Below are positions 2,505-34,770 of a DNA stretch of 64,000 nt, piece by piece. The notes beneath the pieces were generated by a model. It did no database searches. It was not told the origin of the DNA and was given only the letters and a program-made list of their open reading frames with translations. Source of the stretch: Podarcis liolepis (Eukaryota); assembly GCA_965112155.1 (NCBI GenBank), contig OZ218098.1. One strand, given 5' to 3'. Numbering within the stretch: position 1 is the stretch's first letter; each line of letters starts with the position of its first letter. A program made the position numbers and the translations under genes.

Positions 2505-2805
2505 ATGGCTCACCCAGATCTAGCGATGGGTAGGAATGAAACCTTAAGCCAAACCCTCTATGATGCCTTGGAAGAACTCCTTGAAGACCAGTTTAACATT
2601 TTTAAACAGAAGCTACAAGACATTGACCATGATGGAAAGGGGAAAATCCCCAAAGTTCAGCTGGACAGTGCTGATAGATCCGATGTTATTCATCTCATGT
2701 GTGACTTCTATGGTGAGGCCAATGCAGTAATAGTATGCATATGTGTCCTTGAGCATATTGGCAAGGAAGACATTGCTGCAAATCTCAAAGAAGCAACACG
2801 GAAAG
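2505..2805 (+). CDS. NLR-A pyrin (PYD) domain exon
   Basis: [20 protein letters not shown]...[29 protein letters not shown]...[14 protein letters not shown] is a PYD pattern. Acceptor at 2436/2437; donor AAAG|gtaag at 2805 (phase 1). In-frame ATGs at 2505 and 2526. Confidence 0.9.
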
Positions 2806-5210
2806 GTAAGAAATCGTAGCATATTGCTGGAGATTCACTTTTTTCTTTTCTTTTCTTGTTCCTGTTAAAGAGGATCTCCAGTAAGCAAATGCATTGGATC
2901 CTGGTGGAACTGCTAACAGGGACTCACCTGAAGAACTCCATTATCAGGCAGGGGTATAAGGACTTGGGCAGCCCTTAAGGTACCTTGGACTCAAGTTGTT
3001 AAGGCCCTTGTAAGTTAATACAAGAAGCTTAAACTTGGCTCAGTATCATATGGGCAGTCAGTGCAAGCTTTTAAGCACTGGACTTACATTCTAGCAGTAG
3101 TCTGTCCCCATGAACAGTGGAGCCACAGCATTTTACATCTCCACATTTGATTGGGATGGGATTATATATGTCTGTGTAGTTCATGTACAGGCTAGAACAG
3201 CTTTTTATATTTACTGATCTTTCTCATTTGAAGACAAGAGATGGAATTCCTAACAAAAAATATTTGGTGCTTTCTCAATACTTCTGCTAGAGCATGTCCT
3301 TTTCTTAGGTTCTAGGTTAACCTACAGAGACTACATAAAGGGCAAATTTCAGTCAATGAAAGTCTATCCTTCCCTTGCTGAAAATCTGCTTCGAAGCTGC
3401 CAGTATTCAAAGCTAACCTTTGATATTGAGAGTCCCAGAAAGCAGAAGGAAGAACATGAAATCATGGCTTTAGGATGGGTATATTTTCGAGACACTTACA
3501 TGGACTATTGTAGCCTTCAATCAGAGCATACCACTGAAAAGCTATTCAATCCTGATAGAAATGGACTGGTTCCACAAATCGTTGTACTGCAGGGAGCTGC
3601 AGGGATCGGGAAAACAACAACAGCAAGAAAAATCATGTTTGACTGGGCCTGTGGAAGACTTTATCAGGCCATGTTTGATTATGTTTTCTACATTAATTGT
3701 GGAGAGATGAACCTCTGTAATGAGGATAGTAGTATTGCAGAAATCATTTTAAAACGGTGGCCCCGACAGGATGAAATTAAGAAGATGCTGGAGAATCCGA
3801 AGAAACTGCTGTTTGTAATTGATGGGTTTGATGAATTAAGATGCCCCCTTCAACCAGACCCCTTTTGTACTGATCCCTGGCAGAAGGGGCCTGTGGAGGT
3901 CCTCCTGGGCAGCTTACTTAAGAAAAAACTCCTTCCTGAATCCTACTTGATAATAACAACGAGACCAACAGCCCTGGGGTATCTCCATGAGTGCTCAGAG
4001 GAATTACGTCGCCATTTCAAGATCCTGGGATTTTCAAAAGAGGACAGAGAGAAATATTTCCACAAATTCTTTGAGAATAAAGACCGAGCAACTCAAGCTT
4101 TCAGTCTTGTAAAACAGAACGAGACCCTCTTCACCATGTGCTCGGTTCCCCTTGTGTGCTGCATCATCTGCATGGTGTTGGTACAACAGATGGAAAACAG
4201 TGAGGATCTTTGGCAAACATCCAACACGCTCTCTGCCATCTATATGCTTTACCTTTCCAGCTTGCTAAAGCTGCACCACAGCAGCTCATCAAAGGAACAT
4301 ATTAGAAAGAACTTGAAAAGTTTGTGTTCTCTGGCTGCAGATGGAATCTGGAAACGAAAAATACTGTTCTGGGAGGAAGAAATCAAAGAGCTCGGCTTAG
4401 ATCAGGAAGACTCCCTCCCCCTCTTTCTGAGCAAGAGTATTTTCAGAAGGAACATCGAATGTGAACATGCCTACAGCTTCATTCACTTAAGCTTCCAGGA
4501 GTTTTTTGCAGCCTTATCTTACTTACTGGAAGAAGGAGAAGGGCTGAGTTCTGAAAATCCTAATCGAGATGTGATCGGATTATTAGAAAGCTACGCAGTT
4601 TCCAGACCTGATTTAGAAGTAACGGTGCGCTTCCTCTTTGGCCTCGTAAATGAAGGAAAGGGAATGAAGGACATGAAAGAGAGATTTGGATGGAAATTTT
4701 CGCCTAAGATTAAAGAAGTCTTATTAGAATGGGTGAAAAACACCACAGAAACAAAGATGGATGTACATGAGAGGCATAAGCACCAATGGCTTGAATGCTT
4801 GTATGAGAACCAAGAGGAAAATTTTGTGGAAAGTGCATTGGATCACGTGACTGAAGTTACCGTACACGGAAGATACCTGACTAAGACGAGAGTGATGGCC
4901 CAGGCATATTGCTTGGAGCACTGCTCTGCTTTGGAGGTCCTTCACGTGGAGGAAATGTTATTTATGAGATATTATGATTTTACCGAAGAAATACTAGAAA
5001 AAGAGGAGGAAGAAGAAGAGGGAAAACTTACTAGTTCAGAACCACGTTCAGACGGGTATGTATGATTGAAATAAGGGATGTTGAGTTTCTCTGCACCTGC
5101 CACTTCCACACACGGGATTTCACCACATGCAGCAACTTTTTGCCCTTTTCTGATATTTTCCAGAGTTTCTGATGAGGACACACATTTGACTTTGAACTCT
5201 CATGAAATTC

Positions 5211-5241
<31 letters not shown>

Positions 5242-8200
5242 CATGTGTTTTCTTGATGCTGACCAGCCAGATCTTCTTTTGATAGACAGATTTCTGGTTA
5301 ATAGCCAAAAACAGTTAAGACCCCATTTAACTCTTGGCTGACCAGCTGCTGCATTAGGAATTCCTAGAGTGGGCAAAAGGTGTTGACCGTGGCAGCAGGG
5401 CAGATGCAGGAGTTGGGAAGTGTGTGGGTGGTATGAACTAAATGTTCCCATGACGTTGTATTATAGATTATGGCCTTGGAGGAAAGCAAGAATGCAAGGG
5501 AGTCTGGCCCCCAAAACACAGGGGAGCGGCATGGCAGGGTGAGCATCCCAGTTCCTTGGGAGGATGATGAGTAACGCACTACTTTTGTGGTGCTTGGAGT
5601 CTGTTGATCAAAATGGGAGATAGAGAATGCTTCTGTATTGTATACTGTGAAGCATGATAGGAAATGTTCATGAACTTAGAGAGGAGCCTACCTGGGCTGT
5701 ATCTTTGTGGCTCAGTCACAGAGTTATCAGCATACAGTCACATGAAAGAGAAAGTATTTCATGTCTATGCATATCTAAACTGACAGGCATCCATGTTGGG
5801 TGTAGTGCCTCTTCTGAGCTACTGAAAAGAATGGATATGTTAATCTTCATCTCCAGCAAAAAGGTTGCAATGGAGAAGAGCTTTGATTTTAGCTCAAAAT
5901 GCTTGTTTTTGTATAATCTTTTTTTATTGAGTTTTACATTGCATATTTAAATTCAAACATTAAACACCACCATCAGCATTTAGGATTCCCTGCATCCTTA
6001 GACTCCCCTCCACCCTTCCATGGTTACCATTTTCAATATTTTCCAACTGCCTCACATATTTTCTCTTTTTCTTAAACAGTCCATTTTTACCTTAGTTTTT
6101 ATTACATTACACGCGTTACTCAAATCCTGCCAAAGTTTTTAGTTGTTTACAGTGTTCTCTTAAGTACATTGTAAATTTTCCCCATTCCATATTGAAGTTC
6201 CTCTCTTCCTGGTTTCTGATTTTCCTGGTCATTTTCACCATTTCAGCGTTGTCCATAATCATCAGCCATTCATCTCTGGTCAGGACCAGATATTTGTAAT
6301 CTAAGTTATCGTGCCTTATGCTGGAACCAGTGCAAGAGTTATGCAACTGAGTGAATGTAATTTTTATTGTTTGAAGTTGAGAGCTGAGTTCTGTGATAGT
6401 GCAGTTTTTTTGTAGGGATACAGTTAGGGCCAAAGGCGCCATCTTGAGAGGGCGGGCTGGGCAGAAGCTTCCCAAGCTTTGGGAAGGAGGCACCAGACTT
6501 TAATACTTTAATACTCTAATTTACCGGGAACATGTAGGGGTCCAGCTCAGTTTCCCATGTCCAAAGACTGCACACCACTGTTCTGTGAGTAAAGGTTTTT
6601 GAACCATATTTTTGGACTGGATAATTTTTATTTCAATACAAGAGTCAGTTTTTGTTCAATCAGTGGCTTCCACTGGATAATAATATAATAATCTCAATAG
6701 GTTATGGGCCCAGATCCAGAGACTTAGAAGAGACCCAGAGTACAATTTTTTGAATCGACTGACTTGTGGTATTTTTGGGAGACCTGAAGAACCTTTGTTT
6801 GGGAAGCTGGAATCCTGTTGGTAAGTCCTCCTTTTGGGGGGTGGGATGTGGCCTGATCCCTTGGATCAACTCGCACCGAGATACTGATAGTGGGACAGGT
6901 TGTGCAACAGTGGTATGATTAAAGTACAGGTTTGAAAACCACCACACTATTTTCGTCATAAAAATAAAAGAATATGACGAACCTTTTCTTAACAAGGACA
7001 TTTTCTTTCATCTCTTAGTGAACAGTATCAAAACCCAGCCATCTTCAAAGCACTGAAGTCTCCAAAAAGTAACTTAAAGTGTGTGAGGTAAGAAACTGTT
7101 TGCGTTTAACTTCATTAGAGTCCTTTTGCAAGGGCAGAATATTGACCCTGATCCTGGCTGTGATGGACCCAAGTGGGTGTTCCTCTGCACTGTCCTCAGT
7201 TTCTTCAGTCAGCGAAAGGCAGCTCATAAAGCATGGAAAAGAAACCCACAGAAGTATCCCCAGTGGCTCCTCTCTAGCTCTCTCAAGCCTAATACGGAGC
7301 ACCAGAATCAGTCAATATCGTGCCCATGTTTCTGGCCCACCAACGCTTTTTGCCTGATCCGGGCAGTCCTGCTGCTTTTGGGTAACTGTGCCCCAGGATG
7401 TTCATTCCGGGGAGGAGGGTTCAGTGAATTTAGGGGGACAGACTTGGCAGGCTTGCTACCACCCACAGTTCTCATGTCTCCTTCCAACAAACGCTATGTA
7501 TCGGAGATGATGGTTAAAGGTTGAATTGTAGAGAACGTGGACATTTTGTGGCTGGAAGGAAATACAATGCTAGCATTGTTATTGTTTTGTTTTATTGTAT
7601 ACGCTGAATCATTTTCTATATACAGATTTTCATCCAATTGTCCTCCACAGAGTGAAGTTTTTTAGTGAACAGCTTGTTCCTTGTGGTTTCCTCGCATCTG
7701 TTCTCTCTGTTAACTCAACACTATTGGAGCTGGAGCTGGGAAGAAATAAAGTCGGAGATTCAGGACTGAAGCTGCTAGCTGAGGGACTAAAGCACCCAAA
7801 CTGCCAAATACAGAAAGTGATGTGAGTCAGTGCCTGTTAAGATTTCGGCCTCCCTGCGTATCTGCTCCGTTTGCTACTATGATTGCTGGGGCTGAAGGTT
7901 TATAAGGTCCCTCCCTTTATCTCACTCCTTCATTCTGAAGACAAGTGAGGTCAGCAATAAGTGGGACGAGAGTCCATCTCTGTTTGCTAACCCTCTTGAG
8001 TAGAGCTGGGTGATATTTCAATTCATCATCTGAAACCGATATGAAGTTCAGATTGCGATATCAGTTTCAGACTTTTTGAGCTGGCAATACATCACGGCTC
8101 CCTGGCCACCACCAGCACAGCACATTTCACTTCCATCTGCCTGTGCTGTACTGGCAGCGGCCGGGAAGCTGCAGTGTATTGCCAGCTCAATTGTCTGCTC

Positions 8201-11200
8201 TCCCATCTGCCTGCCTGCACATTTGCCTTTGCCTGAGCAAGTGGGACAGGCTGTCTTTCCTCCACCTTCTCAGGCTCCCTCTAACAAGGCCAAGCTGTGG
8301 AGAGAGGATGGGAGGGAGTCGGCAGGAGTGCCTTCACCCAGCAAGCAGGCAGCCTTCTTCATTTCCTCCTAGTCACTCCACAGCCCCACCACTTTTTCAG
8401 CCTTTTTCGGTATTATTTCAGATATCATGATATAGCACTGATAGTTAGTTGGTGGTATATTATGATGTTGAAAACCAGATATTGTCCAGCCCTACTCTTG
8501 ACATCAGAGATGCAGATGAAACAGTATTTGTGGAGGTGTGGGTCAGAAAGGAACATGGCAACTTTGTTAGCCAACTTTTGTTGTTGTGACGGAAGCTATG
8601 GAAATGTGGGATGTAGTCATATGTACATACAGCTTTCCCCTCTGAGGAGTTCCACTGGCACTTTGCCAGCGCCAAGGCAACCAGAATATCTTAGGAGATG
8701 GCAGTGGGGAAAGGAAAACATGGGGACAGATGTGTAAACATGTTTTATTTTCATGCTTGTATTTCTGTTTGCTGTAGGTTATATAGCTGTGGACTGACAG
8801 GAGCATGTTGTGAGGACCTGTCCTCTGTGCTCTGTACCAAGCAGACCCTGACAGATCTGGATTTATCAGACAACGCACTAGGAAATTTTGGAATCCGCCA
8901 ACTTAGTGAAGGTTTAAAACATCCTAACTGCAGGCTGCAGAAGCTCGTGTGAGTGTTAACAGGCAGAACAACAATGAAATAATTGTGCACCTGGAAAACC
9001 AACCAGATTTTTGCAGTCACATACACTGTTTTATTGATAACCCTTTCAAAGCCTAATCACCTCGCCAGTAGTCAGCATGTTCCCCATATAAAGCTCACTT
9101 TAAGTTCCTTATTCTCAAATGGTTTGGATCAGCTAGTCCTTATTTAACATTAAAAAAGAGAATGTTTACTCCAGTTTCGAACTAAATGTGTGTTTATTTG
9201 AGTTTTTATTTGTTTCTGCCTACAAAACTTCCCTTTCTCTTGTTCATGTGACTTTTTGGAGAATGTTTGGGGAAATGAGAAATGCTGGCAAAGAAACAAA
9301 TATTAAGTTTTTAAGGCTGTCCTAATAATGTAAACTGTTGAGAGAGTAAGAACTCAACAAAATAAAATACACACCAAGGGGTGTAAGGGGCCATTCTCAT
9401 GGCAGACCAGCACTGGCCTCATTTGGACCTGGGAATTTGGCAACCAGAAAGCCACCCCACTGTCCTTTCTGACCCATTGTGCAAAACCCTTCACTTATTT
9501 TGCTTGCTTTTTAAAAAGCCATGCTCAGTGTTTCCTGCATTGCAGGGGGTTGGACTTCTGGTCCCTTCCAATCTATGATTGTTCTTGTTTTCGAAATTCT
9601 ATTCACAACTCATCCAGAAGTATTCTTGTTTTTTCTTTTGCTGTCCTCTGCAGGTTATCCAACTGTTCTTTCTCAGGAACTGCTTGTTGGGGTTTCGCCG
9701 AAGTTTTGCGTACAAGCCAGACGCTGAGAGAGTTAGATCTGCGTTTCAATAAAGTGTGGAACATAGGAATGATGTTGCTGTGTATGGGACTAAAGGATCC
9801 AGCTTGTAAATTAGAGAACCTACAGTAAGTTTGACTGGTGCAGTTCACTCTACTGAATGCTTCATGCAGGTGTTTTCAACTTTGGGGTGGGGTGGGCACA
9901 CTTGGATTATTTTTTTAAAATATAAATTTGTATTAATTTTCCAATATTTACCCAATATTACCACAGTTTTGCCAATTATACAGATACCAATCAATATCAA
10001 AATAGTTCCAATTAATTCCAAATTTATACAATTTAAGCAAAGTGTTTCCTCACATTCCTTGATCAGTGGTTTTTGTCCAGTTCTTATATTGCTGTGGTTC
10101 ATTTTTTTAATCAACTTCTAATTACATTTCAGTTAGTATATTAATCATTAAGATAACAGCTACATTTTTTAGCAATTACTATTCATGTTAATGCCATATC
10201 TAACTTTTTCTAGGATTTCAAATAAGGTGCTCTGATTATTTCCCTTTTTTCTGTGTGTGTCAGTCTGAATATATCCAATTCTTCTTTGGCGATCACTTGT
10301 CGCTGAGTAAGATTGTCTTCCATAAACACGGTTTTAACAATGAGTCTGTAAGTGATTGTGTAAGCCAATTCTGGATCCACACATCCTTCCACAGCCTTGA
10401 GACAGTCTTTAAACCTCTTTTGTTGACCACCAGCATTATGCTTTCCATTTTTAAGTTCAGAAATTATGAAGTCCTTGGCATTTGTCCTCTCCAGACCCTC
10501 TCCAATCCAAAGCAACATCACCAAATAATTGAAACCCTTGCCATATTAAACCCATTCCCACCTTGCCCTTGGAAACCCATGACATGGAGAGAGATGTAAG
10601 TGCTGCTGACCTGCTCCCCATATGTCTCCCTGGTTGAAAAAATGTACCATCCTAGTGTGAGCTCCCACTCCTCATGCTTTACTTCTTGCTGCATGTAGGA
10701 GACAGTGGAACACTGATGCCATGACAGCATGCCATGTGTTTCCCCAAGCTACAGATTATCAGGGAGATGCATGTGGCCACCATTAGCCAAACATCTTCCT
10801 GTTGCAGGTATCACAGAATCACAGAATCATAGAGTTGGAAGAGACCACAAGGGCCATCAAGTCCAACCCATGGAGTCCAACCCATGGAGTCTGGTCCAGA
10901 GCCACTCCATGTTTTATCCTTCCATCTTTACCATATATGGTGTGTGCTGTTGGAATGAGCTATGTTTCCATCTTGCAGGTTGGTTAAGTGCAGCATCACA
11001 AGTTGTGGAGATCTGTCTTCTGTCCTTGCCACAAACCAGATGCTGAAACAAGTAGATTTACGAGATAATAAACTGGGAGATTCAGAAGTGAGGCTGCTGT
11101 GTGAGGGCTTGAAACATCCAAACTGCAAGCTTGAGGTTTTGTCGTAAGTATGAAATCTGCCTCTTGGAATGCATTGTGCAAAAGGCTTCTTCCAGTAATG

Positions 11201-14200
11201 ATAAAAAGAATATCTACAATTATACTTCCGTTCTACGGGGGGGGGGGGGGGTTTCGTATAGGTTTCTATGTAATGTGGGATACATTGCCAAGAAAAGGGT
11301 TATCAAAAGTGTAACAGAGAGAAGGACACGGAGATGTTTGCTAGATTTTTTTCTACCACCAAAAAGATCTTGAGGCCATGATGGATAGCTTGATCAAGTT
11401 TGTTGACTCATTGTGCAGCACCTGTAAAAAAGGTGAATTGTGTGCTGGAGATCATTAGGAAGGGGGTTGAAAATATGACTGTCGGAATCTTAATTCCTTT
11501 ATACAGATTTCTGCTGCAATCACACTTGAAACACTATGTATAGTTCTGGTTGCCATACCTCAAAACGGATCTTGCAGAGCTGGAGCGGGTGCAGAGGAGG
11601 ACAAAATAATCAAGTGGCTGGAACGACTCTGTGAAGGAGAGTTGCTATATTTGGGACTTTTTAGTTTATGAAAGAGCTGAAAGAATAATAGTGGAATTGA
11701 AGGCTTGTAACAGATACCCCTGAACCTTCCTCTATCTCAACAGCAGCCACTACCTGATTATTCAGAGAATCATAACCTCCTTTAATAAATAAAACACCTG
11801 TAGGTACCCTGAAATATGTATGGGGCATCTCCAAACACATTTAAAAAGTAATCTTGCTCCAGATTCTCAGAAATGTAGAGCTAATATTCCAGCACAATAG
11901 TTGCAAAACAGTTAGACAGTATTTAACAAATGATATCATAGTTTACAGACATTATCTGCTGGTACGTAAATTGGCTCGAAGGATTCAGCATTAGGGAACT
12001 TCAGAAGTGATTATATCATAATTGGAAAATTGTTTTTTTTTTTACCAAACAGTCATATTACTTCTTCTGTTCATAGCCATTTCCTTCTGTTTGATTTAGG
12101 TTGTTTGCTTGCTGTCTGACAGCAGATTGTTGCAAGGCTCTGTCTTCTGCTCTCATTACCAACCAGACCTTAAGAAAATTAGATTTAACTTGGAATGCAT
12201 TAGGTGATTCAGGGGTGAAGCTACTATGTGAAGGGCTAAAACATCCAGACTGCAAGCTGCAGAGTTTGAGGTGAGTACTTGTGTGAGCATGTGAAAATAT
12301 GCAATGCAGTGTAATATGTAATAAATGCAGCATTTTTGTCATGCAAAATGGAGTGATCATGGTGATACCTATTGGCAGACAAAAACTATCAGGAGTTAAG
12401 CTAATGGGAAATTAATGCCCCTCGCATTGCTGTTGGGGCACATGTCATACGTTCAACAGCAAATCTATATAGATATTCTTGACTTCTTTTTACACTATTT
12501 GCAAGTGAGACTATTATACATCCAAGTGAGTAAAAATAATCATTTATAATGATTATTATTTATTATTTATACCCCTCCCATTTGGCTGGGTTTCCCCAGC
12601 CATTCTGGGCGGCTTCCAACAAAATGTTAAAAATATAGTAGAAGAAAGAATCTTGACAGATTGCCGCTCTGAGTGGCTTGTATGATCTAATTGGGTCCAT
12701 GTTAAACTGACCAAAGCTCAAAGCCAGGCAAGTATGGGTTATGTTAAACCCACAAGTCTAGAATCTGGAAATGGCAGTCCAGCAACAGGAAATGGATGTT
12801 AGAAAAACCAATTGGATGTTACGAAAACATTCTTTAAGAAACAGATAAAAGTTCCTAGAAGCTTTAAAGAGGGCTCCAGAACTTTCTTTAGTGTGTAGGA
12901 GTGGCACTCTAGGTTTGATTGGTGTCAGCTGGAGGTGCAAATAAAGGGAGGAAGTTGCAGGCTGCAATTTCTGCACTATGAAAGCACACACACACACATA
13001 GCACGCACGCTAACAACAAGGTTGGAAGTAGGACAATGTATGCTGCTGATACTGTGAGTTTTGTTGTATCAGGATTGTTAATTATTGGACTGAGATTATA
13101 CCATGCTGGAGAGATAAAGAAGGAATGTAAATAGTTTATAATAATGATAACAGAAATGCTTGTGCAACCAGTCAAGCAATAAAGAAGCTCTTGACTGTGA
13201 ATTTGAGTATGACTCCTGTTCTTGTCCTCTGCCTCGGAAAAACAGTAAGAAGTGGTTTTGCTGAGGTGCCACCACACAAGCAGAAAGCGCAGCAGAAGTG
13301 TGTGGGCGGTAACCTCTAATACTGGAATATTGTTTCCTTTTTGTTTTGAAAGTGAAAGATTGCCAAACTTGTGGGGCGGGAGGTGGGGCTTGTGTATTTA
13401 ACCCTCTGAAGCACAGGTGGACTTTCCTTACTTGGAGGTTTTTAAGCAGAGGTTGGATGGCCATAAGTCATGGATTCTTTAGTTGAGATTCTAGGATAGG
13501 CCTGTGTGACCCCTTGGCTGCTCTCTAGGTTAGCCCTGGCAACCTGTGCCAGATTAAACCCTGTGGAAGCCCCTAGGTATTCAAAATCTTGGGGCCTCCC
13601 TCACAAATTATCTCCTAACATGTTTTTGGAATTTTCTTTCAAAACGAAATCAATATTATTTTGAACCGTTGTTGCGGGCCCCCTAAAAGGTTGGTGCCTT
13701 CTCTGCCTGTTTGGGAATCCATCACTGCTGACAACCTTTCGCTAATGCCCAACTGATCAGCCATCAGGATATCTATTGAGTGTGTTTGTATGTCAGTGAT
13801 AACTCTTGTTACTGTTCCGTGCAGGTTGTCCCACTGCTCTTTTACACAAGCTTGTGGCGGGGATCTTGCCGAAGTCCTGAGGGAGAGCCAGACACTGATA
13901 GAACTGGATCTGGCTTGGAATGAAATCGAAGACAAGGGAGTGGAGCTGCTCTGCGAGGGACTGAAACACCCAGACTGTAAACTGGAGATTCTAGAGTAGG
14001 TCACCAGCTCCTTTGCAGAAGCACAACACTCTCTTTAATCTGTGCTTGTTTTCATTTGTCAGGGTGCTGCAACAGTTGTTAAAAATGAGGACTCAGTATC
14101 AACTGCATTTTAAAAATAGTTGTGTTACTGTGTTTGGATTTGTCATATTAAGAAAACAAACACACATGTGCCCCAGTTTGTCAGTCTGCCCAGCACTCTT

Positions 14201-14654
14201 CATAAAACAGCCTGCCTTACCTAGTTTCTGCTTGGAGGTAATTGTAGATAATATTTAAAGTAGATCTTCTGTAAATTCCAGGGGAAACGCTTCCCCAACA
14301 TCCTGTGCAAAGCAGAGAGTGACAGTATTACCCAATGGCTTGACCATGTGGCTGTGACAATCGATCCCTCTTTGCGCTTCACATGCAAGTTTAAAAACCA
14401 ATCCCCTTGCCTCTTATCCTTGCTATGGGGAGAAGGCTGCCATGTGTGGTTTTTCAGGAGAAGTCGTATATCAGGGTTGGGCAACCGCAGTCCCAAGGAC
14501 TGAATGAGACTCTCCAGTCATTTGGCTTTTGGGACTCTCTCCAGATCAGGCCATACTCTTTCCCAGGCCATACTCCCTTTGAGTACTTTTGCCAGTTGGA
14601 ATGTGTCCTTGAACAGTGAAACACCTCTTCCTTCCTTGGAAGGAGAATGGAGAA

Positions 14655-14700
<46 letters not shown>

Positions 14701-17121: not shown

Positions 17122-17426
17122 TATAGGTTTGATAAGGATTTGACACAGGGCCTTTACAGTGGTGGCAACCAGGTTGTGGAATGACTTTGGAGGTTTTTAT
17201 GGCCCCCAGCCTTTTCATTCAGCTACAAAGCCTGGTTTATTTCACTGGGCCTTTGGTCTTGGGTATTGTTTTTGGTCTGATTCTTTATTGTTATTTGAAC
17301 GCTGTATTGCATTTGCTGTTTGTGAGTTTTTATTTTTATTTGGTAATTCTAATGCTGTGTTGGATTTTATCTGTTTTTATGTGTCGTAAGTGGTTTTAAA
17401 GCCCTTTAGTGGTAAAGGCAGGCTAA

Positions 17427-22100: not shown

Positions 22101-25100
22101 AGGTATACTGAGATGCTCCTTCAGGTCTTGGACTCCAAATCCCATCAGCCCCAGCCAGTATAGTTAACTGTCCTAAGCACCTTGGGAAATGCAGTTTCGT
22201 AAAAGGCCTAGGGCTCTCTGAGGAAGAATGATCACCACACTTACAGACCTAGAACTTCCTACATTTATTGGAAAGAAGTAGCGACAGTTAAACTTCTTTC
22301 AAACCAGTTTAAATTTTGTAGTGCAATCACTAAAACTGCTTTTTTCTCTCCCAAAACAGAAAGGGTAGCGTAACCAATAAGCATATTTTGTCCATTATGC
22401 TCATTTTATATTAGAAAACAGAACATAACGAACTTTTCTACCTTTTTAGGCCAGATCAGAAAACACAGGAGCGTTCAGCAGTTTACCTTCTCTGTCAAGC
22501 ACTGAAAGATCCAAACAACAAAATCAGGAAACTGGAGTAAGTCACAGCTGTTTTCCCTGCCTTCTTACTTGTTTGGCTCTATTGACTCAGACACACTCAG
22601 CTAATGTGTGTCTTATTGAGGTTCAGGTATTTCCAAAGCAGTGCCTGAATGGGTCCCAGGGCAGCCCCACATTGTCAGGGGTTTGCTGAATAACTGGCAA
22701 GTGGAAATGTCTGAGGTCATGAAAGTTTTGGGAGGCTACAGAGGACTCTATATTAGATCTCATCATCAGCTCCTTTCTCTGGCAATATTCACATGATCAA
22801 GTGCGAAACAGATCTGTCGGCAAGATGTATGTTGAGCTTTATGATTCCTGCATTCCATGAGGTGGAACTACACAGATGACCCTTGGGGGGCCCGCAGTGA
22901 TTCTGTGAGAGTTGCACCCAGCCCCTCTTTAGGGAAAGCTTAAATTAATACAGTGATACCTTGGTTCTCGAACTTCCTGCACTCAAACGGAAGCTATGGA
23001 AGCCAAGTCAGATGTTTGGCTTCCGAAAAACATTCGCAAACTTGGAACACTTACTTCCGGGTTTGCAACATTCGGGAGCTTATTTGTTTGGGAGCCAAGC
23101 CGTTTGACAACCAAGGTACCACTCTACAGTGGTAGTGGTACCTACAGTGGTACCTCCATTTACGAACTTAATTTGTCCTGGAAGTCTGTTCTTACACCAA
23201 AAGTGTTCTTAAACCAAGGCGCACTTTCCCTAATGAGGCCTCCCACCGCCAGTGCCCTTCCACTGTTTGGCTTCCATTTGGCTTCCAGTGCAAAGTTTGC
23301 TAGCTGGAACACCTACTTCCAGTTTTGCAGAGTTTGTTCCCCCTGTACTAACAATTAAGTGTTTCAGAGTTTCCTTCACATGTCAGGAGGGACAGGCTTC
23401 TCCATTCTCATGTGCCACAGGCCTCTGGTGGGTGTGAGCAGTGGTCATTCTTTCTCTCCACCTTAGACTTTGGAGGTGGGTGGAGATCATCCCCACAACT
23501 ATACGGAGATCCCATACATTCTCTGGCTCCAAGCTTGGGAGGTCAGCCAGGGATTGCTTTCTTGCTGGGGCACCCTGATTGTGGAGCAGCAAAATTGGCA
23601 AGCTCCCCACTGGCCTTTCCTCCAGAAATCATTAGCAAGGTGCTTCCTTAGCCACTCCAGCACCCAACACACCTTTAATACCACAGGAAGCCATCTACTC
23701 TTTTTGGCTTGGCTAGCAAGACCTGACAAAAATGTTGCTCCTCTTGGCCAGGAGGGGAGGGAAGGCCGTTGGAAAGACCAGGTTGACCCAGGGACAGAGG
23801 AAGGGGGTGAGGTGAGTGCGGGCTGCCCCCGGGTGTCACCACTGAGGGGGGTGACAAAATGCCAGGCATCACTCACTGCGGGGTCTGAGCCACGTGTCTC
23901 TCCGCGCTGCCCAAACGTTCCCCCTCTGCCTCCCCCCAGCTGTAAAGTGGCTGAGTGGGAGGAGGCAGGCAGACCCTGGAGGTCCCGCGGTGCGCCCCAG
24001 GTGTGGCTTCCTCTGCCACTGGGTGGACCAACACACCCCATGTGCCAGGGTAGCTGTTAATGTGAAGGTCCATCTCTCTGTGTTTTCAGTACAGTAGGAG
24101 AGGAGAACCTGTGGGCCCTCTGGATATTGCTGGATTTTAACTCTCATCAGCCCCAGCAAGCCTGACCCCAGGGGTCAGGTATGATGAGAGTTCCTGCCCA
24201 ACAACATCCAAAGGGCCACAGCTTAGCCTCACGTGCAGGACAGAATTAGAAGTCGCTTGTTGCCTAAGCCAGTTATTTACAACTGGGTTCCATTTCCCCA
24301 TATCTGTTGGTCTTTAGCATGCTTCTCAAATGCCTTCCATTTGCCTATGGCAACTTCCCAGAGCATTTCCGTGGATCCCAGAGAAAGAGTTTGCTAATTT
24401 AGTGGGAATATTAAAAGCTGTTGTGCTTTGAACCACCTAGGGAGAAAAAGAAAAGCTCCAGATGCAGAATGTTTTACACACGTTCAGGTGGCCTGTGCGT
24501 AATCAACATCTGCTGCATCATTGAGATGAAAAAGAAGACTCAGCCATGTTTATGAGGGTTTGTCCAAAGGATACCCAGGGAATGAGCTGGCCAATGGAGC
24601 TGTTTCTGTCCCATTTTGCAGGCTTAATGGATGCCAGCTCACAGACAATTGCTGTGCAGATCTTTCCACTGTTCTCTCAACAAGCCAGAAGCTGGTAGAA
24701 CTGGACTTGCAGGCAGCCATTCTGAAGGAATCGGGAGCCAGGCTGCTATGTGAAGGGCTGAGTCATCCCAACTGTATGCTAGAAAAACTGGGGTAAGCTG
24801 AAAAAAAGCTTCTTCTGCCTAAGCATTACCAGTGGAACATAAAGGCATTGAGGGTGCACAACGTCAGTTGTCTTTAGGTGTGCAGAATTACTCAGGGGTT
24901 TTTCTGTTTTAAAAAACAACCACAGCACAATTTCTCCCTCTTGAACAAAAGACTGTTTTGGAGAGATTTCAAAATTTTAAACTAGAACATGAAGCTTAAG
25001 GGCCCACTATCTCTCAGGCGTGTGCTGTCAGTATCTCCCTTTCTTGTGGTCCCTCTTCTGTATCTTGATTCACACTGCATCTGTGTGTATTCCTTCTATA

Positions 25101-28100
25101 TACACACTGTGATGTATAATGTTGGGTATTGTTTGCCATATTCTATAATTCCTGCCATCACAGATCCTAACCTGAATTTCCCAGAACTCCACATACAGAA
25201 AAGTGTGTATATACTGTATGTGTGTGTTTTTAATCAGTTTTAATCTGACTTACTTTTATCTCTTAGTCCAAAGCATCTTTCAACAATAAAGGCACCATTG
25301 TTTGAAAATGGATATTCCTAAGTTCCCCAATGAATTAAATCATAACTATCCTCAGTGAAACCAACGATCACTATACCTAGTTAGGCAAGTGGGCCTAATG
25401 TGATCTGTGCTCCCCAAGGAGTGAAAAGGACACAAGGTTCTCCTGTGCTGGATCACACCTTCTTTTTCATGAGTCTTAGAAGAAGGGTGAGAAGCCACGT
25501 GATGTCATCTCGATCTCAGGCTTTTTCAACCACTCACCTCTTTTTGTACCTTTCAGACTGAGGAACTGTGGCCTGACTTCTGTTTCTGGCAGAGACCTTT
25601 CCACTGTTTTCAGTACCAGTCAGAAGCTGACAGAGCTGGAACTGGGTTGGAATCCTTTACTGGGAGATCAAGGAGTTCAGCTGCTGTGTGAGGGGTTGAA
25701 GCATCCGAACTGCAAGCTGCAGAGCTTGGGGTGAGGAGCACCATGCTGTCCCTTTCAGAGTCAGACTGCCAAAGCCCAGAGCTGGTGGATCAGGTCTAGT
25801 GTTTTTTTTGATAAGCAGGTGGTCTTACCAAGCAGGTGATCCAATTTTTTTAGGCCTTAGCCAGCACTTTAAGATGGACTCAGAAATAACACTGGGGGCC
25901 AAGGTGAATCAGGCAATGGTGGAATCGTAAGCTCAAAACGGCACCAGCTGCAGTTTTAATTTTGCTTTAAAAAATAGTTATTATACTGCTGTATCATAAA
26001 AATATATAATAGTAATTTGCAACAATATAAAACATAAAACCAAACAATAACATCATAGCAAGTTAAAGGCAAAAATTTTAAAAAATATCAGCAGTCCATT
26101 GTGGGGGGATGCACTCTTAATTGTCTGCATAGGCCTGGTGGAATAGAAAAGTTTCCCGCAGGCATTTAAAAGTTGGCACAGAAGTTACATGCTGAATCTT
26201 TATTAGCAGGGTGTTCCATAGGATCGGGCCAGTGACGCTAAAGGCTCAGCTTTTCGTTGTTGTCAAATGAGCCTCACCAACTCGGGGAATGACGAAAGGT
26301 TTCTGAACGTTCCTCAAGGGCAGTCACACACAGATCATCCTGCAGTAGTCTAAACCAGGGTCATGTTTTGTGGTCCTCTCCAACACACACTTAAAGATTG
26401 AATGTTTGAGGCCTCAGAACTTTTTATTTTTAAATTTAGGAAGAGAATCATCATGGCACGAGTTGATGTCTTCTCATGCCATGTGTTTTTCTTTCGTGTT
26501 TTGCACTGCACAACCAACCAAAATTCTGCTCTGAACCTTCCAGAGCAGATTTTGGGGAGGGGACAAAGAGAAATCAGAAGTCTTGCAGATCACCCACTGT
26601 GGTGCTGCAATCCCCAAAGTTTTTTTGTGGGCTCCCCAAGACCCCCCCCCAATTAATTTGTCCATTTAAAAAAAGTGTGCATTTTGCTGTGTTACTATAA
26701 TGGCAAAAAAGTGAACTGCTACCCTCAGACCCAACCTTGATAGCAATTAATTGGTCACAGTTATTGAAAATAGCACACAATAGCTGATAGGAAAGCCTTT
26801 GGGATAGCAAACTTGAGGACTGCAGTCTTCACTGTTCCCACATTTCTACTTTGGCCACACCCACTCTGGCATATGGCATGGGGAGGAGAGAGAGAGAGAG
26901 AGAGAGAGCACTGCAGTGCAAATGGGATGCAGCTTATCTTGGTTGCAGCTTGAAGTATGAAAGAAGCAGAGGCTCAGCAAGTGCCCCCCCCCAAAAAAAG
27001 TAATAACAATTTTGCACACACTATGCAGGTTGGACAGCTGCAATCTCTCAGCTGCCAGTTGTCAGGATCTCATCCCTGTTCTAAGTACCAGCCGGACTCT
27101 GATGAAGCTGAACCTGGAATGTAACAAAGTGGGAGATGCAGGAGTGAAGCTGTTGTCTGAAGGACTGAGACATCCAAACTGCGTACTGCAAACTTTATTG
27201 TAAGTGGGAGCCAAATTCCTTCCGTGTGAAGTCCTTGGACAGCTTACTTTCAAGGAGCCCTGGGTAGATCAGGGGTCCTGCTGGACATCATAGTCTGGTC
27301 TCTTGGTTTCTGTAGAGTTGTAGGATCATTCATGCCTTTATTCTTCTTGATAAAACAAAGGATAACCCACCCTGCCTTCCTGAAAGGGAGGGATGAAAAT
27401 CTGACAATATCGCAAGCACTTATTATTTCCTCTTCCCTGCAAAGCAGAACCAGAGTAAACCAGCAGTCTGTAGGAACAGACCTTCAGACTGGCCTCCATG
27501 TAATTTCCATTGAGGACCTTCTGTTCAGCTACAGTTGCATAAAGGTATTAGGAAATGTTTGATTGACCAGGAAGCTCAGGTGTGCATTCAGTGTCAGGGT
27601 TTTCGACTCCTCTTCTAAACCTCTTGCAATTGCAAAATCCGTGTGTGAACATCCGGCTCACGGGTGTTTCCTCCATCCCATATATAACACCAGGGACGGA
27701 ACTGGCCAGTTTGAAAAGGGAGACTCGGGAGCACATTCCTGCTTCTTCATTTCTAGCCACTGGCAGAATTTAGCACTTTCTGGCAGCAAACGAAAAGCCT
27801 TCCTTTGCAGGTACAGTTTGAACAATCAGGGCTGCACAGGAGGACTCTGTTGACAGCAGGTGACTGACAGGTGGTTGACACCTTAACTATCTTAAAGCAC
27901 AGCCAGGTGGCTCTTTTTCTTAAGTCGTGTTGAAGCTGGTTTGGGAGGAAATGCATCAAAACACAGCCTTTAATAGGATCGCTGCAGCATCGATATGGAT
28001 CGTCGGTTGCAGCTAACTGGACACAGAGTAAATGGGAGCATGTGCCCAGCCTTTGCGGCAGTGAATATCATGTTATAGGTGAGGCCCTGGCTGAAGGGTC

Positions 28101-28756
28101 TCAACCTGAGTTTTACATCAGAACCATCCACAGATCACGGTATACATGCAGCTTAGCTATGGAGGCAGACAGCCTTCCTTTCATCACCCACCAATTATAG
28201 GCTGCATCAGCTGTAAAGTGAAGAAATTCACTGACGTGATCACTGCGATTTAGAGTGGAAGGGCTGTTGTTTCACAACATATCTTCTTAATATCAGAGGG
28301 TGAAATAGAAGGGGCCTGTAGAAGTGAGTGAGCCATGTTTGCACTTGTTGGATCTGTTTGTTTTCTCTTGCAGGCTGGACACAAATGAGCTCAGCCCTGC
28401 CTGTTGTGGGGATTTCAGCTCCATTCTCAGCACCAGCCAGACATTGACAGAACTGGCACTAGAATATAATGGACTGGAAGATGCTGGAGTGAGGCTGCTC
28501 TGTGAGGGGCTGAAGCAGCCCAGCTGCAAGCTGCAAAAACTGAGGTGAGCAGCGGCTGGGATTTGTGCTGTGGAGTTCCACGTATTGCAGAATACAAAGA
28601 AATGTCTGCTCTCAAGGGAAATGAAAAGAGGTGATTCCCTTTTGCACAACTATAGCATCCTTGATCCAGCATATTGGGGAGAGGGTTAATATATTTGCAT
28701 GCAGGAACAAATAGCTGTATACTTTAAAATAGCAGAAAGAATATGAACATAGCCCC

Positions 28757-28820
<64 letters not shown>

Positions 28821-31800
28821 TTGCTTGATAAACATAGCAGAAGAGGAAAGGCGAAGGAATGTAGAGAGAAGAGAGGAATAACCTGAAGGTAAGGAGGAGG
28901 GGAAATGGATCATGACCCAGCACTCCCGAGGGCCTTCAGAGACGCTGCTTGCTCTCTGTGGCTGATCCAGCTGGCTTTGCAGATCTCTCAGCCATTTCTG
29001 TCACTTCTAGGGGGCCACACTTTGTCATGGGCACTGTAGTCTCCCTGCAGGTTTCTCATCATGGATCTGTTGTGCTTACTGACATGCTTGTCTTCTTTCT
29101 CCACCCACCCACAAATGAGGGTGGACCGGCAGAGCCAACCAGTTTTCACCTGCTTGTTGTTCTTGATTTCCTACCCCTCCTAAAACGTCTGGCAGCAGGA
29201 CTGTGGCCATAGGAAGAAGGCAGAGTTGCTCTGAGAGCCTTTGCATCACATACAGAGTGGGATTTGTACAGACAAACCCAGCACACGTGGCACAAGGTGA
29301 TCTGCATGAAAACCTGAAGGGAATTTAGGTTTTCTGAGCAGAGCTGATTGCTGCTGCACTTGCCTTGGGGCAGGGAAGGGCCCTAGCTCTATGTCGAAGG
29401 GAGGGAACTATCCTTGCTGAACTACAAGCCCCACCATCCTTGCCGTGTTTGCTGGGCCTGATGGGAGTTGTAGTTCAGCAGCATCTAGAGAGCCAACGGT
29501 TCATCACCCTTGGTGTAAGCTGCCATCCCCTTGCACCAGGTGGGTCCCATGTACCTCTGCACTATTCAGCAGCACAGGAATGAAGGTAGAGTCAGATAGT
29601 TGAAAAAGACTCAGAGGTGAGTGTTGGCTCTTAGGAACATGAAAGATAAACTTTCTCATGCATTTGGAAGGACAGGCCTGGAAACATGAAATAGACAACA
29701 AAGTCTGGTCAGTTTTAATTGACTATTGAGACCACACAGAGGAGTGTGAATAGGAGCAGGCTGTGTGCTTGTGAGTGAACCAAAACCACATACACAAACC
29801 AAAATCCTTCCTCAGAGTGCCTGCACAGCTGCAATGTTACTTTGAGTCCTTCAAGACTCCTTCATCCTGACAGTGGCTAGGAATAAAGGCTTCAGGGTCT
29901 TCTAGCAAGCAGAAGCTGTTTGTGGAGGAAAACGTGAACGGGAGAGGTTTTTCTTTCATCTTTTCTTTCTCACACAGGCTGGTCCGATGTAATATTACAG
30001 CTGCGTCTTGTGAAGATCTCTCTTCTGCTCTCGCAGTCAGACAGACTCTGACAGAGCTGGTGGTGGAATGTAACGAGCTTCGAGATCCAGGGGTGAAGCT
30101 TCTGTGCAGAGGTCTGAAGCATCCGCACTGCAAGCTGCAGCTCCTCAAGCAAGTAATCGGCTGGATCCCTCTGGGGTTGGATAGCATCTTTGGAGCCCAG
30201 GTTGCCCCCCCCATGAGAGTGAAGGGACCCTAGAAATGCTGCACCCCAAGCAGGAGCCAGACCGACCCTTTTGTACAGTCAAGCCTGTTGAGGCATCACT
30301 TGTTTCTGTTCAGAATCACAGTATTCCAAGATCCCTTCCTAATTTTTGATTTCTTCACCTTAACTATTCATAGGCTATTAACAGGTTGTCCCTCACCCCC
30401 ACCCCAACCAAAAAAATTGGTTTACATTTCCTGCCATCAAGTGCTGAGAGCAGAGGTCAGCAACCTTTTTCAGCTGTGGGCCAGTCCACCGTTCCTCAGA
30501 CCATGTGGTGGGCCAGACTATATTTTGGAAGGGGAAAAAAGAACAAATTCCTATCCCCCACAAACAACCCAGAGATGCATTTTAAATATAAGGACACATT
30601 CTACTCATGTAAAAATATGCTGATTCTCGGACCATCTGCGGGCTGGATTGAGAAGGTGATTGGGCCACATCCGGCCCCTGGGCCTTAGGTTGCCTACCCC
30701 TGACTGAGAGTGTCACTACACATCTTCTCTGCCTGAGTTTCAGAGTGAGAAGTTTCTGCACCTCCAGGAAACTCTTTGAGGAACATAGAAGCCCATTTTT
30801 GCTCATTGAATGGGTTCAGTAGCAGCTACTGTCAGCTGAGGCATGACCAAGAAAGCCCTTGTCATCCAGTTTGTTACATAGGGGCTGCAGGATAATTGCT
30901 GCAGGTGACAGGAATTGTTTGTATTTGAAGAAAGTTGCGAGGTGATCTGAAGAAACAGGAGAAGGGTCTTTACACTTCAAGCCATCCCCTTAAAACCCTG
31001 TTCTTCCATGCCCTGCCGGAATCCAGTTGTGCAGAGTGATGGAGGAAAGCAGAGGGATGGAGGAAAGCAGAGGGACTCTTCTAGCTTTTGTGTGAACATA
31101 ACACAGCCAATGCTTTTTTTCTCCTGCAGCTTGTACAATTGTGATCTCACCGCTGCCTGCTGTGCAGATCTTGCCTCTGTCCTCAGCAGCAACCAGACGC
31201 TGACCGAACTCTTCCTGGGAGGTAACCAGCTTGGGGATTCCGGGGTGCAGCTGCTGTGTGAGGGACTGAAACATCCAAAGTGCACGTTGCAGAAATTGTG
31301 GTAAGGGAGAACTCTGTTCCTTCGGGTTCAGATCATGAGCACAGTGCTTGTGGGTCCGGAATTATGTTCTGTTGCATTTGAGGAATCTACCGTATTTTTC
31401 GCTCTATAAGAGGCACTTTTTTCCTCATAAAAAGTAAGGGGAAATGTGTGTGTGTCTTATGGAGTGAATGCAGGCTCTGCAGCTATCCCAGAAGCCAGAA
31501 CAGTGAGAGGGATTGCTGTGCAGCGCTCCCTCTCGCTGTTCTAGCTTCTGGCTTAGCCGTGCGAAGCCTCTTCAGAGCAGGCGGAGCATTCATTTCACTG
31601 CCCTGAAGAGGCTTCGTGCGGCTATCCCAGAAGCCAGAACAGCGAGAGGGATCACTGTGCAGTGCTCCCTCTTGCTGTTTTAGCTTCTGGGATTCAGAAT
31701 ATTTTTTTTCTTGTTTTCCTTCTCCAAAAACTAGGTGCATCTCATGGTCTGGTGCGTCTTATAGTGCGAAAAATACGGTAGTTTTCATGGGGAAAATCCC

Positions 31801-34770
31801 TCCTTATCCATCCATCCATCCATCCATCCATCCATCCATCCATCCATTCATACCTCTCTCTCTCTTGTTTTCATTTTTATAGTCTTTATATGTGCACTTT
31901 CCTAATCGCAAAAGTACACATGCCCTAGCCAAAGGAGGCCCTTCCCCACTCCAGGCTAATTTCTCCTGTGTTTTCCATCCCTCTAAGTGGACTTTAGCTC
32001 TTCCCTTGCCCACCCCATTCCTCCCCTCCCATCTCCAATCTACGGTCCATCCCACCACAATGATACATGGAGGCATTCAACACAGCGCTGTGGAAATCAC
32101 ATTTCAGATTCCCAGATGGACTGATCCCCTTCTTCTTCCTCCACGTCCTGCTCTGGGGGCTCTCTTAACTTCTCCTTGAGCCAATTTGGGGTGGGGGTGT
32201 TGCAGAGGGAGTGCCAGGCGAGGAGAGAGGAGAAAGGCACATTGCACTAGCAGGACTTCTTCTTTAAAAGCTGCCCAGTATCTCCTGCCCTTTTGGTGTC
32301 CTTTCCTAAGGAAACTCCCTCCACTCACCCAATTCAGTCATGGCGGTCTCACCATAAACCACAGGGGCTCCCTCTTCTACCCCTCCTGAAACCCATGGTC
32401 ACACAAGGTGCACTTGTGTCCTGCAGCTTGTGTAGCACTGAAATCACAGCAGCAGGTTGGGGAGAGATCTGTTCTGCCCTCAGCACAAACCAGATGCTGG
32501 AACACATTGATTTATGGAACAATCCATTGGGAGATTCAGGAATGAGGCTGCTGTGTGAGGCACTGAAACACCCAGGCTGCAAGCTTCAGATTTTGTCGTA
32601 AGTAAGAAATCTTCCTATCTACACAGTTTTTTTATCTGTTTTAATCTGTTTTTGAATAATTCAGTTTTTCCTATCTACACAGTTTTTTTATCTGTTTTAA
32701 TCTTTTTTTGAATAATTCACTTTTTCAAGAACAAAAATATTGTCAGGAAATGAGATGCTTAACAGAAGGTAACAGTGAGAAGAACATGGAAATATGATGA
32801 AGCTTTTCCTTCCAACAAAGAGTGAGGGCTAGTAACTTTTCTCTTTACAACCCCCCGAAACCCCAACAAAGCCTGAAAGCTGAAATTCTCAATAGGTAGC
32901 TTTTCATAGCAAATTCTGTTCTATGAACAAATGTAACAGCACTGAAACACAATAAGGAAAGTACAATGAATTTGACTAGTTAAGAAATTTGGATCACTGT
33001 GAGTATAGGCAGCTCTCAGTGTGTGACCACGGATGCCCACACCACTTTCAGACCTGGAAGAGGGTGTAACGGGGGGGCTCATGCGCACTCCACCAACAAC
33101 GGTGACGCGCATGAAGATGTGGAATGCAACCCTGGCACAAATTGGGGGTTGCCTGTAATATATCAAGAGTTCTTCCAAACTGTTGCCACCCTCATACTTT
33201 GTGGAGTTGTAGTTACAAGTAAGGAACAAGTCAGCAGGCCCTCCCATCCTAGCTGTTTGGGTTTTTTTTCAGGTTATGGAATTGTGAATTCACCTCGGCT
33301 TCCTGCAGGGATCTCTGCTCTGCTCTCAGCACCAACCAGAGTCTGAAGAAGCTGGAGCTGGGGGGTAACAAACTGGGAGATTCCGGAGTGAAGATGCTCT
33401 GTGAAGGACTGAAAGACCCAAGCTGTGGACTGGAGGAAATTGAGTAAGTTGCAGGCAGCTTCCTTGATGTGCAACGTTCATTTGAGGAGCTGTGTGGTTG
33501 CCTAAGATAGGCTCTCCAGGGGCAGAGATGCCCCTGACTTTTAAAGTGGAAAGTTAAGAAAACAAGGCAGGAGAAGAACCGAGGGAGCCAGTGTGACAAT
33601 CAAACCGTGAGTCGAACCGGGCAGGGGGACATCAAGGGACAAGGGGAAATTGCCTAATCAAGAGTGGCATTTGTGAAAGAAGTCGAGAACAGGAGCATGC
33701 TTACCTGTGGAGGTCTGAGTCACTGTTGGCGGATTGTTCCCAGGAACATATTAGTACATAGAGAATGGAATGTATAGTATTGTTCTTAGTATAATGATTA
33801 AAGCCGATGGATTATGAATGGGGAGCCTGTGGCCCTCCAGGTATGTTTGGACTCCCATTGGCTCTGTTGGCTGATGGGATTTGGAGTCCAGCCACAGGTT
33901 CCTGCTCCATGCTGTAGAAGGTCCTTTTCATGAGAATCGCAGGCTTTGAACTAGACCCGTTTACTTGATATAATCAAATACGTCTGTTACTTAAGCACTA
34001 AAAACACGTCTCGGGCTTTTGCATCTAAGCACTACCACTGAACCCTGGGTCTCTGCTCCTTACTTAGAGATACCTCCTTCACCGAGTTTTTTCAACCCTG
34101 ACTTGTTCTGATAAGCACCAAGGAGTCCTATAGAATTCCAGTGAGCATAAGTGTGATTGCATGCATAGGCAATTTAGCTGTTTAAATAAGGAAGGAAATG
34201 AATGAAGAATAAAGCCCAGTGGAAGCTTAAATGGCTGTAAGGAGCCTGATAAGGCCCATTAGTCATCTCTGTACTTTTGACTTTCTCTCCATGTAATTGG
34301 GTTGGGGGGTGGGGAGTGTACACAGTACATCAGGGGGCTAAAAAGATTTGCCATTTTAGCAAATACCTGTGAAAGTGGTGTGCTAGAATAGAATAGTATG
34401 TCTTAAGAAACCATTCTTAGCAACCTCAGCAGGTTTAAATGTCACAATTTCTGTCCTGCAGAACCTTCCCTAGAAACTAATTCCAGGGGACGAGAGGAGT
34501 TCCTCCCCCAGGAAATGTTCAGCACCACCATGCAAACTTGCATATTAAAGTGGGAAGCAGGGACCTCAAAACTGCCTTTAAAAAAAAAAATCACTTAAGT
34601 TTTGTAGTGTGTATAAGTTGTGCATGGTCTTTGTTGCCATTTATAGGAGGCAACAGAATGTTTCTTTCTCTTCCATTCACAGACTCGATATTGACGAGTT
34701 ATCTGAAGACACAGTGAGAGAGCTTAGTAGCGTGAAAAGGATTAAGCCTGACCTGGTTATAGGCACATAG
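19083..34770 (+). CDS. NLR-B: NLRP6-like NACHT-LRR receptor lacking a pyrin domain, ~1075-1078 aa
   Basis: Start is either micro-exon 19083-19104 spliced to 19909, or ATG 19896. NACHT exon runs to 21577, then 22450-22536, 24622-24792, 25557-25730, 27029-27199, 28374-28544, 29978-30148 (GC donor), 31130-31300, 32427-32597, 33273-33443, 34683-34770 (TAG). From ATG 19896 the sum is 3228 nt = 1076 codons. Segments [28 protein letters not shown] and C-terminal [22 protein letters not shown] resemble mammalian NLRP6 as I recall it. Symbol withheld because orthology is untested. Confidence 0.88.
19258..19343 (-). mobile_element. Sauria-SINE-like 3' end fragment
   Basis: aaggtaaagaacccctggacagttaagtccagtc...gctcatct is the reverse of the (ACCTTT)-ending squamate SINE as I recall it. 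Confidence 0.55.
19896..21577 (+). CDS. NLR-B FISNA/NACHT exon
   Basis: 561-aa ORF: [10 protein letters not shown] (FISNA start), Walker [10 protein letters not shown], Walker [28 protein letters not shown]. Donor CA|gtaagt at 21577. Confidence 0.93.
21780..22130 (-). mobile_element. L2-like LINE 3' fragment
   Basis: Short AT-rich repeat followed by cccgcccatctggctggg...ccactctgggc...gggaggatgttccacagggc; related stub at ~12555-12630. Confidence 0.55.
22951..23330. mobile_element. Adjacent/nested CAGTG(G/A)TACC MITE remnants
   Basis: TA|CAGTGATACCTTGGTT ... AACCAAGGTACCACT, then repeated CAGTGGTACC termini and an internal sequence like the 16896 MITE. Confidence 0.65.
28760..28815. repeat. 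(TA)n microsatellite
   Basis: Direct reading. Confidence 0.95.
30451..30702. mobile_element. hAT-type MITE
   Basis: Termini CAGAGGTCAGCAACC / GGTTGCCTACCCCTG; 8-bp flanks GCTGAGAG / ACTGAGAG (7/8 match). Confidence 0.7.
31390..31778. mobile_element. Tc2/pogo-like MITE, family 2
   Basis: TIRs CCGTATTTTTCGCTCTATAAGA / TCTTATAGTGCGAAAAATACGG with TA flanks; internal inverted copies of gctatcccagaagccagaacag. Confidence 0.85.
31807..31848. repeat. (CCAT)n microsatellite
   Basis: Direct reading. Confidence 0.9.

Follow-up and report, generated by a model that had tools for sequence, protein, structure and literature searches.

What does an NLRP-type receptor do once it has lost its pyrin domain (PYD), and does it work together with a PYD-bearing neighbour? 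These questions are raised by a stretch of 64,000 nucleotides (nt) of Podarcis liolepis DNA without runs of N, hereafter the window, in which two NLR genes lie head to tail on the plus strand. NLR-A (2505-16124) encodes a PYD and NLR-B (19083-34770) does not, while less than 2.8 kb separates the stop codon of the former from the first base of the latter that is seen in RNA. We put a probability of roughly three in four on the reading that these are two separate, intact NLRP-type genes and that NLR-B belongs to an old lineage, as found here confined to lizards, in which loss of the PYD exon predates the divergence of the major squamate groups. This would be the second, independent sauropsid case, after NLRP3 of songbirds, of an NLRP3/12-type receptor long kept without its only known output domain. 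Since a PYD-bearing relative lies next door, the role of a PYD-less NLRP becomes directly testable. The interest of the case lies in comparative immunology, and the kind of system is not new.

Gene models

The NACHT exons of the two genes stand out as large plus strand open reading frames (ORFs), 3356-5065 for NLR-A and 19896-21581 for NLR-B. Pfam identifies NACHT in each (E 1.1e-45 and 3.3e-41, respectively), together with NOD2_WH and NLRC4_HD2 in both exons. The closest database proteins to both ORFs are from Podarcis (96% for P. lilfordi, 95-98% for the P. muralis and P. raffonei models), and the LRRs of both genes are of the ribonuclease-inhibitor type, with Pfam LRR_6 in the orthologues. 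An earlier note on this DNA, made from the sequence alone, had judged the NACHT exons too diverged for a fresh duplication; with 43% identity between the two ORFs and NLR-B placed in an old lineage (see below), NLR-B is indeed not a recent duplicate.

The model of NLR-B consists of 12 coding exons for 1078 amino acids (aa) without internal stops. All acceptors are AG and all donors GT, the sole exception being a GC at 30149, and the predicted protein aligns without gaps to XP_033012455 of Lacerta agilis (92.9%). Its parts are as follows.

18914-19104, plus strand: 5' exon in the extent seen in RNA, with donor GT at 19105 (RNA contig)
19083-19104, plus strand: first coding part, MTPPMRS and 1 nt (frame reading; TAA in frame at 19080)
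19909-21577, plus strand: NACHT exon (Pfam NACHT; both end joints seen in RNA)
20160-20192, plus strand: Walker A, GAGTGKT (motif alignment)
20388-20423, plus strand: Walker B, with DGFHEL at 20403-20420 (motif alignment)
22450-22536, plus strand: exon 3, a linker of 87 nt (RNA joint 21577|22450; tblastn of orthologues)
24622-24792, plus strand: LRR exon (alignment to the Lacerta protein, as for the next seven)
25557-25730, plus strand: LRR exon of 174 nt
27029-27199, plus strand: LRR exon
28374-28544, plus strand: LRR exon
29978-30148, plus strand: LRR exon with the GC donor
31130-31300, plus strand: LRR exon
32427-32597, plus strand: LRR exon
33273-33443, plus strand: LRR exon
34683-34770, plus strand: terminal exon and stop (matching C-termini of the Lacerta and P. 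lilfordi orthologues)

Public RNA reads were mapped on 16600-22599. Stranded reads over the NACHT exon of NLR-B, at a depth of 1-5, have the orientation expected of plus strand RNA, and the joint 21577|22450 is present in raw stranded reads as well as contigs, from three runs and two organisms. In addition, a contig of 1611 nt has 18914-19104 spliced directly to 19909-21304, with GT..AG at the ends of the intron; it comes from a closely related species (a small RNA run), and the window keeps both the GT and the AG site. NLR-B is transcribed from the plus strand and correctly spliced. The relative that supplied the contig carries a 24-nt insertion behind 19017, in the 5' untranslated exon of NLR-B.

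The upstream exon shows TAA at 19080 in the continuing frame and then ATG 19083, from which MTPPMRS, a split Asp codon and YREKYREH are read. As these in-frame stops upstream are part of the contig, the form seen in RNA cannot gain a domain from any additional coding exon. The micro-exon proposed in the earlier note is thereby real, with 19083-19104 as its coding part. The note had also pointed to an in-frame TAA (19884-19886) just upstream of ATG 19896: both are present, but they are intronic in the RNA-seen form, which starts at 19083. RefSeq models of P. lilfordi, P. raffonei, P. muralis and Zootoca begin with MTPPM(Q/R)(S/P)DYREKY, and ATG 19896 is the alternative start of a Zootoca isoform and of the Ensembl model of P. 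muralis; either start yields a PYD-less protein. The acceptor of the NACHT exon (AG at 19907-19908, phase 1) is homologous in position to the NLR-A acceptor 3308|3309. Over 19074-19104 the 5' exon can be read without a stop in two frames, one being that of MTPPMRS, and each frame fits one of two acceptors 7 nt apart, 19909 or 19916. The second combination is that of the Lacerta agilis RefSeq model (MLINDTSDAAREKY), and the RNA contig takes the first. Further downstream, an isoform of P. lilfordi skips the LRR exon 24622-24792.

NLR-A was modelled with its P. lilfordi orthologue as guide, which gave 12 exons for 1151 aa with AG/GT at all internal splice sites and no internal stops, at 96.4% identity to P. 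lilfordi CAI5763102. Its LRR exons are AG/GT and phase 2 throughout, and the boundaries of exons 3 and 4 were picked for an open frame, an end of exon 4 at 7087 being equally open. The strong donor ATG|GTGAGT at 15334-15335, directly before TGA 15336-15338, leads to the terminal exon at 16088. The parts are as follows.

2505-2805, plus strand: exon 1, ATG and PYD, 100 codons and 1 nt, with donor GT at 2806 (PYD profile)
3309-5055, plus strand: exon 2, linker, NACHT, WH and HD2 (Pfam; AG/GT boundaries)
3587-3619, plus strand: Walker A (motif alignment)
3806-3841, plus strand: Walker B, canonical DGFDEL (motif alignment)
6701-6820, plus strand: exon 3, small linker (tblastn with the P. lilfordi protein, 82% identity, as for exon 4)
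7019-7078, plus strand: exon 4, small linker
7651-7821, plus strand: LRR exon (tblastn of orthologues, as for the next six)
8778-8948, plus strand: LRR exon
9654-9824, plus strand: LRR exon
10979-11143, plus strand: LRR exon of 165 nt
12100-12270, plus strand: LRR exon
13825-13995, plus strand: LRR exon
15164-15334, plus strand: LRR exon
16088-16124, plus strand: terminal coding exon and stop (C-terminus identical in the P. lilfordi and P. raffonei models)

These models bear out much of what had been read earlier from the letters, namely two same-strand NLR genes with intact frames and splice sites, an end of NLR-A at 16124, canonical ATPase motifs in NLR-A (both Walker A and Walker B), and a more canonical set of eight full-length LRR exons in NLR-B (171 or 174 nt each), against seven in NLR-A of which one has only 165 nt.

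Absence of a death-fold domain in NLR-B

A PYD profile, derived from 68 such domains of sauropsid and mammalian NLRPs, matched the first exon of NLR-A, which had been called a PYD exon from the start, with E 1.5e-34, and this is the only match of the profile in the whole window; Pfam PYRIN likewise recognizes the P. lilfordi orthologue of NLR-A (E 8.9e-17). Upstream of NLR-B the result is different. A six-frame scan of both strands of 15336-19909 with the PYD profile gave E 36 as its best match, and a Pfam search of the ten plus strand ORFs of at least 69 aa in that interval found no family apart from one chance match (E 0.15). The scan between the two genes that the earlier note had asked for thus yields no death-fold domain, in agreement with its statement that 16124-19909 holds no PYD- or CARD-like ORF. 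Seven orthologues of NLR-B were searched as well, and neither PYRIN nor CARD nor Death was found at E<=0.1, with an NLR-A orthologue as control at 8.9e-17 for PYRIN. Taken over all places searched, the search for a PYD came up empty for the gene itself and the 4.6 kb before it, for the 5' exon supported by RNA and for 13 gene models of orthologues.

Both genes have the NACHT motifs and C-terminal LRRs by which the NLR family is recognized. The N-terminal PYD that marks the NLRP subfamily is present in NLR-A and missing from NLR-B, so that NLR-B is an NLRP by descent, not by architecture.

Phylogeny and constraint

Relatives of NLR-B were searched with its NACHT exon and then with the Anolis homologue. 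Full-length relatives were obtained from Sceloporus, Anolis, Elgaria, Lacerta, Podarcis, Zootoca, Hemicordylus, Tiliqua, Lerista, Euleptes and Sphaerodactylus, nearly all of which start 3-7 residues ahead of the motif DYREKY. Such short leaders beginning with Met are seen in Elgaria, Hemicordylus, Sceloporus, Anolis, Euleptes, Sphaerodactylus, Tiliqua and Lerista. In Tiliqua and in Lerista one model each is instead extended at the N-terminus, by about 200 and 116 aa, respectively, and in these extensions the PYD profile finds nothing.

A maximum likelihood tree was built from 70 NACHT regions. The relatives of NLR-B form a clade of 14 rows with full support (100 in the Shimodaira-Hasegawa-like approximate likelihood ratio test, SH-aLRT), every member of which is PYD-less. 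It comprises geckos, skinks, a cordylid, lacertids, an anguid and iguanians, and its branching matches the species tree with geckos first. The B lineage is present in every major lizard group sampled. As all members lack the PYD across this range, the loss would be ancient and the gene has been kept since. NLR-A groups elsewhere, in a clade (support again 100) made up mainly of squamate NLRPs with a PYD, ten snake species among them; word-based searches among annotated proteins found no B-clade protein in any of these ten, and no snake protein fell in the B clade. Within squamates the paths in the B part of the tree are no longer than those in the A part. In an approximately unbiased (AU) test a tree uniting the A and B clades was not rejected (p 0.38), so a tandem duplication in the squamate stem with loss of the PYD in one copy is possible, as is an older split. 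The tandem arrangement itself is most simply taken as the trace of an old tandem duplication.

The earlier note had labelled NLR-B NLRP6-like, which has to be dropped. Among solved structures human NLRP3 matches it best (342 bits over FISNA-NACHT-HD2, beginning at residue 136), against NLRP6 at 290 bits, and in the tree it stands in a separate lizard-only clade. RefSeq names these genes NLRP3-like or NLRP12-like in related lizards, and two genes of each kind have been counted in P. muralis (PMC11258412). In a full-text literature search no account of a squamate NLRP lineage without a PYD came up, and at the level of the lineage the observation appears to be undescribed.

The ATPase motifs are largely retained. 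NLR-B has the sensor-1 TTRP and the winged-helix His (FLHLS), and both are kept throughout the B clade, as are Walker A and the first Asp of Walker B. The altered Walker B that had been noticed in NLR-B, DGFHEL, is confirmed by the motif alignment, and the His in place of the second acidic residue occurs within the B clade only in lacertids (Podarcis, Lacerta). The same position is Glu (DGFEEL) in Elgaria, Anolis and Sceloporus; in geckos, skinks and the cordylid it is Asp (DGFDEL, although some skinks have DGLDEL), and it is invariant in the A clade.

Some observations weigh against our reading of NLR-B as an intact, long-kept gene. Comparison of its NACHT exon with that of the sister species gives a ratio of non-synonymous to synonymous changes per site (pN/pS) of about 0.62 (11 non-synonymous and 5 synonymous), which is indistinguishable from neutrality. 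The joint of the 5' exon is known only from a contig of a closely related species and not from the species of the window. Because the second acidic residue of Walker B is His, ATP hydrolysis by lacertid NLR-B may be altered. The real evidence of constraint is the long-term retention of the 1078-codon frame in 12 species, that of the window included.

Possible role of NLR-B

If the PYD exon was lost in this way, the tiny first coding exon, with its 3-7 residues before DYREKY, may have taken its place. NLR-B would still be a nucleotide-driven switch that oligomerizes like other NLRPs, but one that presumably cannot itself seed filaments of ASC or caspases. Without a death-fold domain it would have to act through contacts of its NACHT and LRR domains. 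Our best guess, held at somewhat less than even odds, is that NLR-B is a regulator rather than an executor and modulates PYD-bearing NLRPs by co-assembly or acts through an ASC-independent pathway, the latter being what has been proposed for songbird NLRP3 without a PYD. This kind of role is favoured because of the behaviour of NLRP11 and of isolated NACHT domains, and because songbirds keep a PYD-less NLRP3. In human macrophages NLRP11 provides a precedent for one NLRP aiding the oligomerization of another, NLRP3, by way of NACHT/LRR contacts, but it needs its own PYD: after deletion of the PYD it neither binds ASC nor supports NLRP3 oligomerization in human cells, which argues against a PYD-less protein acting alike (PMC9174058). 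Isolated NACHT domains, when overexpressed, bind each other promiscuously (PMC9174058).

Another explanation, which we regard as unlikely, is that NLR-B senses a ligand and co-oligomerizes with NLR-A, whose PYD then recruits ASC. The two genes lie head to tail with less than 3 kb between them, the effector domain missing from the one is present in the other, and hetero-oligomers of NLRs mediated by NACHT are known (PMC9174058), although the promiscuity of NACHT-NACHT binding in overexpression takes away from the last point (PMC9174058). Proteins of the A and B types have consecutive accessions in P. lilfordi (CAI5763101/02), P. raffonei, P. muralis and Elgaria and close ones in Tiliqua. Together with one P. 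muralis model in which both are fused, this suggests, if only indirectly, that the genes are neighbours in other lizards too, yet tandem arrays of NLR genes are common without any functional pairing. The numbers of copies do not match either, with three B and two A genes in Tiliqua and two B and three A genes in Lerista. Snakes have A-clade genes while a B-clade member was not found in them, therefore NLR-A-type genes do not need NLR-B. Finally, the LRR exons of the two genes share 51-74% nt identity, which is close to the identity found inside either gene, and they show neither gene conversion nor any other mark of co-evolution.

A stricter form of the same idea would be an obligate hetero-oligomer in which B is the sensor or gatekeeper and A the executor that recruits ASC, the genes having stayed linked since early squamates for this reason, with loss of the sensor half in snakes. 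We hold it slightly less likely still than the partnership just described; if true, vertebrates would have their first paired NLRP system.

It is very improbable, and already largely refuted, that NLR-B has a PYD that was missed, either elsewhere, in an assembly gap or by read-through into a protein of the type PYD-NACHT-LRR-NACHT-LRR. Such a protein is suggested by the fused model just mentioned, the older RefSeq entry XP_028561425.1 of P. muralis (2248 aa), which leaves NLR-A at donor 15334|15335 and enters NLR-B at acceptor 19035|19036, along the following path in the window.

15335-19036, plus strand: read-through path of the fused P. muralis model (XP_028561425.1 mapped)

Parts of 16600-18800 also have a low plus strand read depth. 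Against this, the codon at the fused junction is TGA in the window and the RNA contig does not use the acceptor at 19036 but runs unspliced through it to 18914, with in-frame stops before ATG 19083; a fused protein is for these reasons unlikely here. Other lacertid RefSeq models separate the two genes, the window has no runs of N in which an exon could be hidden, and more than 10 independent gene models from 11 other species are all PYD-less.

Least likely of all is a decaying copy that survives as an expressed pseudogene, for which the lost PYD, the His in Walker B, the pN/pS and the low read depth might be adduced, but which is hard to reconcile with the open frame and its canonical splice sites, full-length orthologues from geckos through iguanians, conserved core NTPase motifs and correct splicing in RNA.

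Comparison with known systems

The closest parallel to NLR-B is the NLRP3 retained by songbirds and falcons, in which a disordered region stands in place of the PYD and whose output is unknown (PMC11258412). There too an NLRP3/12-type NACHT-LRR protein has lost its N-terminal death-fold domain and persisted throughout a large clade of sauropsids. The avian proteins differ in having a disordered region of about 180 aa where NLR-B has only a few residues, and in being the single syntenic NLRP3 of genomes from which the ASC gene is gone, whereas NLR-B is an extra paralogue beside a PYD-bearing NLRP (PMC11258412).

With mammalian NLRP3 and NLRP12 the lizard gene shares the exon plan of one large NACHT exon and LRR exons of 171 nt. 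It differs from them in lacking the PYD and forming a lizard-only clade of its own, and Pfam FISNA is seen only below threshold, in two B orthologues. NAIP-NLRC4 and the paired NLRs of plants are comparable in that linked NLR genes have a recognizable signalling domain in only one of the two. In those systems physical interaction and mutual dependence have been shown. Plant NLR pairs, moreover, are typically arranged head to head and the lizard genes head to tail.

Other features of the window

RNA depth over 16800-17199, 19200-19399 and 21800-22199 is in the hundreds up to about 1500 on both strands, compared with 1-5 on the NLR-B exon. The same stretches show many loose ends and chimeric joints, and look like an abundant dispersed repeat. 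Rfam gave no family on 15300-22600, and a repeat search on 16600-22600 gave no internal repeat pair.

Pfam returned no family for nine large ORFs elsewhere in the window. Downstream of NLR-B, inspection of the translations by eye points to a ficolin-type gene at 38475-43382, plus strand, with these pieces.

38475-38804, plus strand: ORF with a collagen-like G-x-y run
39659-39880, plus strand: ORF with a fibrinogen-C-like piece
41153-41374, plus strand: ORF with a fibrinogen-C-like piece
42631-42969, plus strand: ORF with a fibrinogen-C-like piece
43104-43382, plus strand: ORF with a fibrinogen-C-like piece

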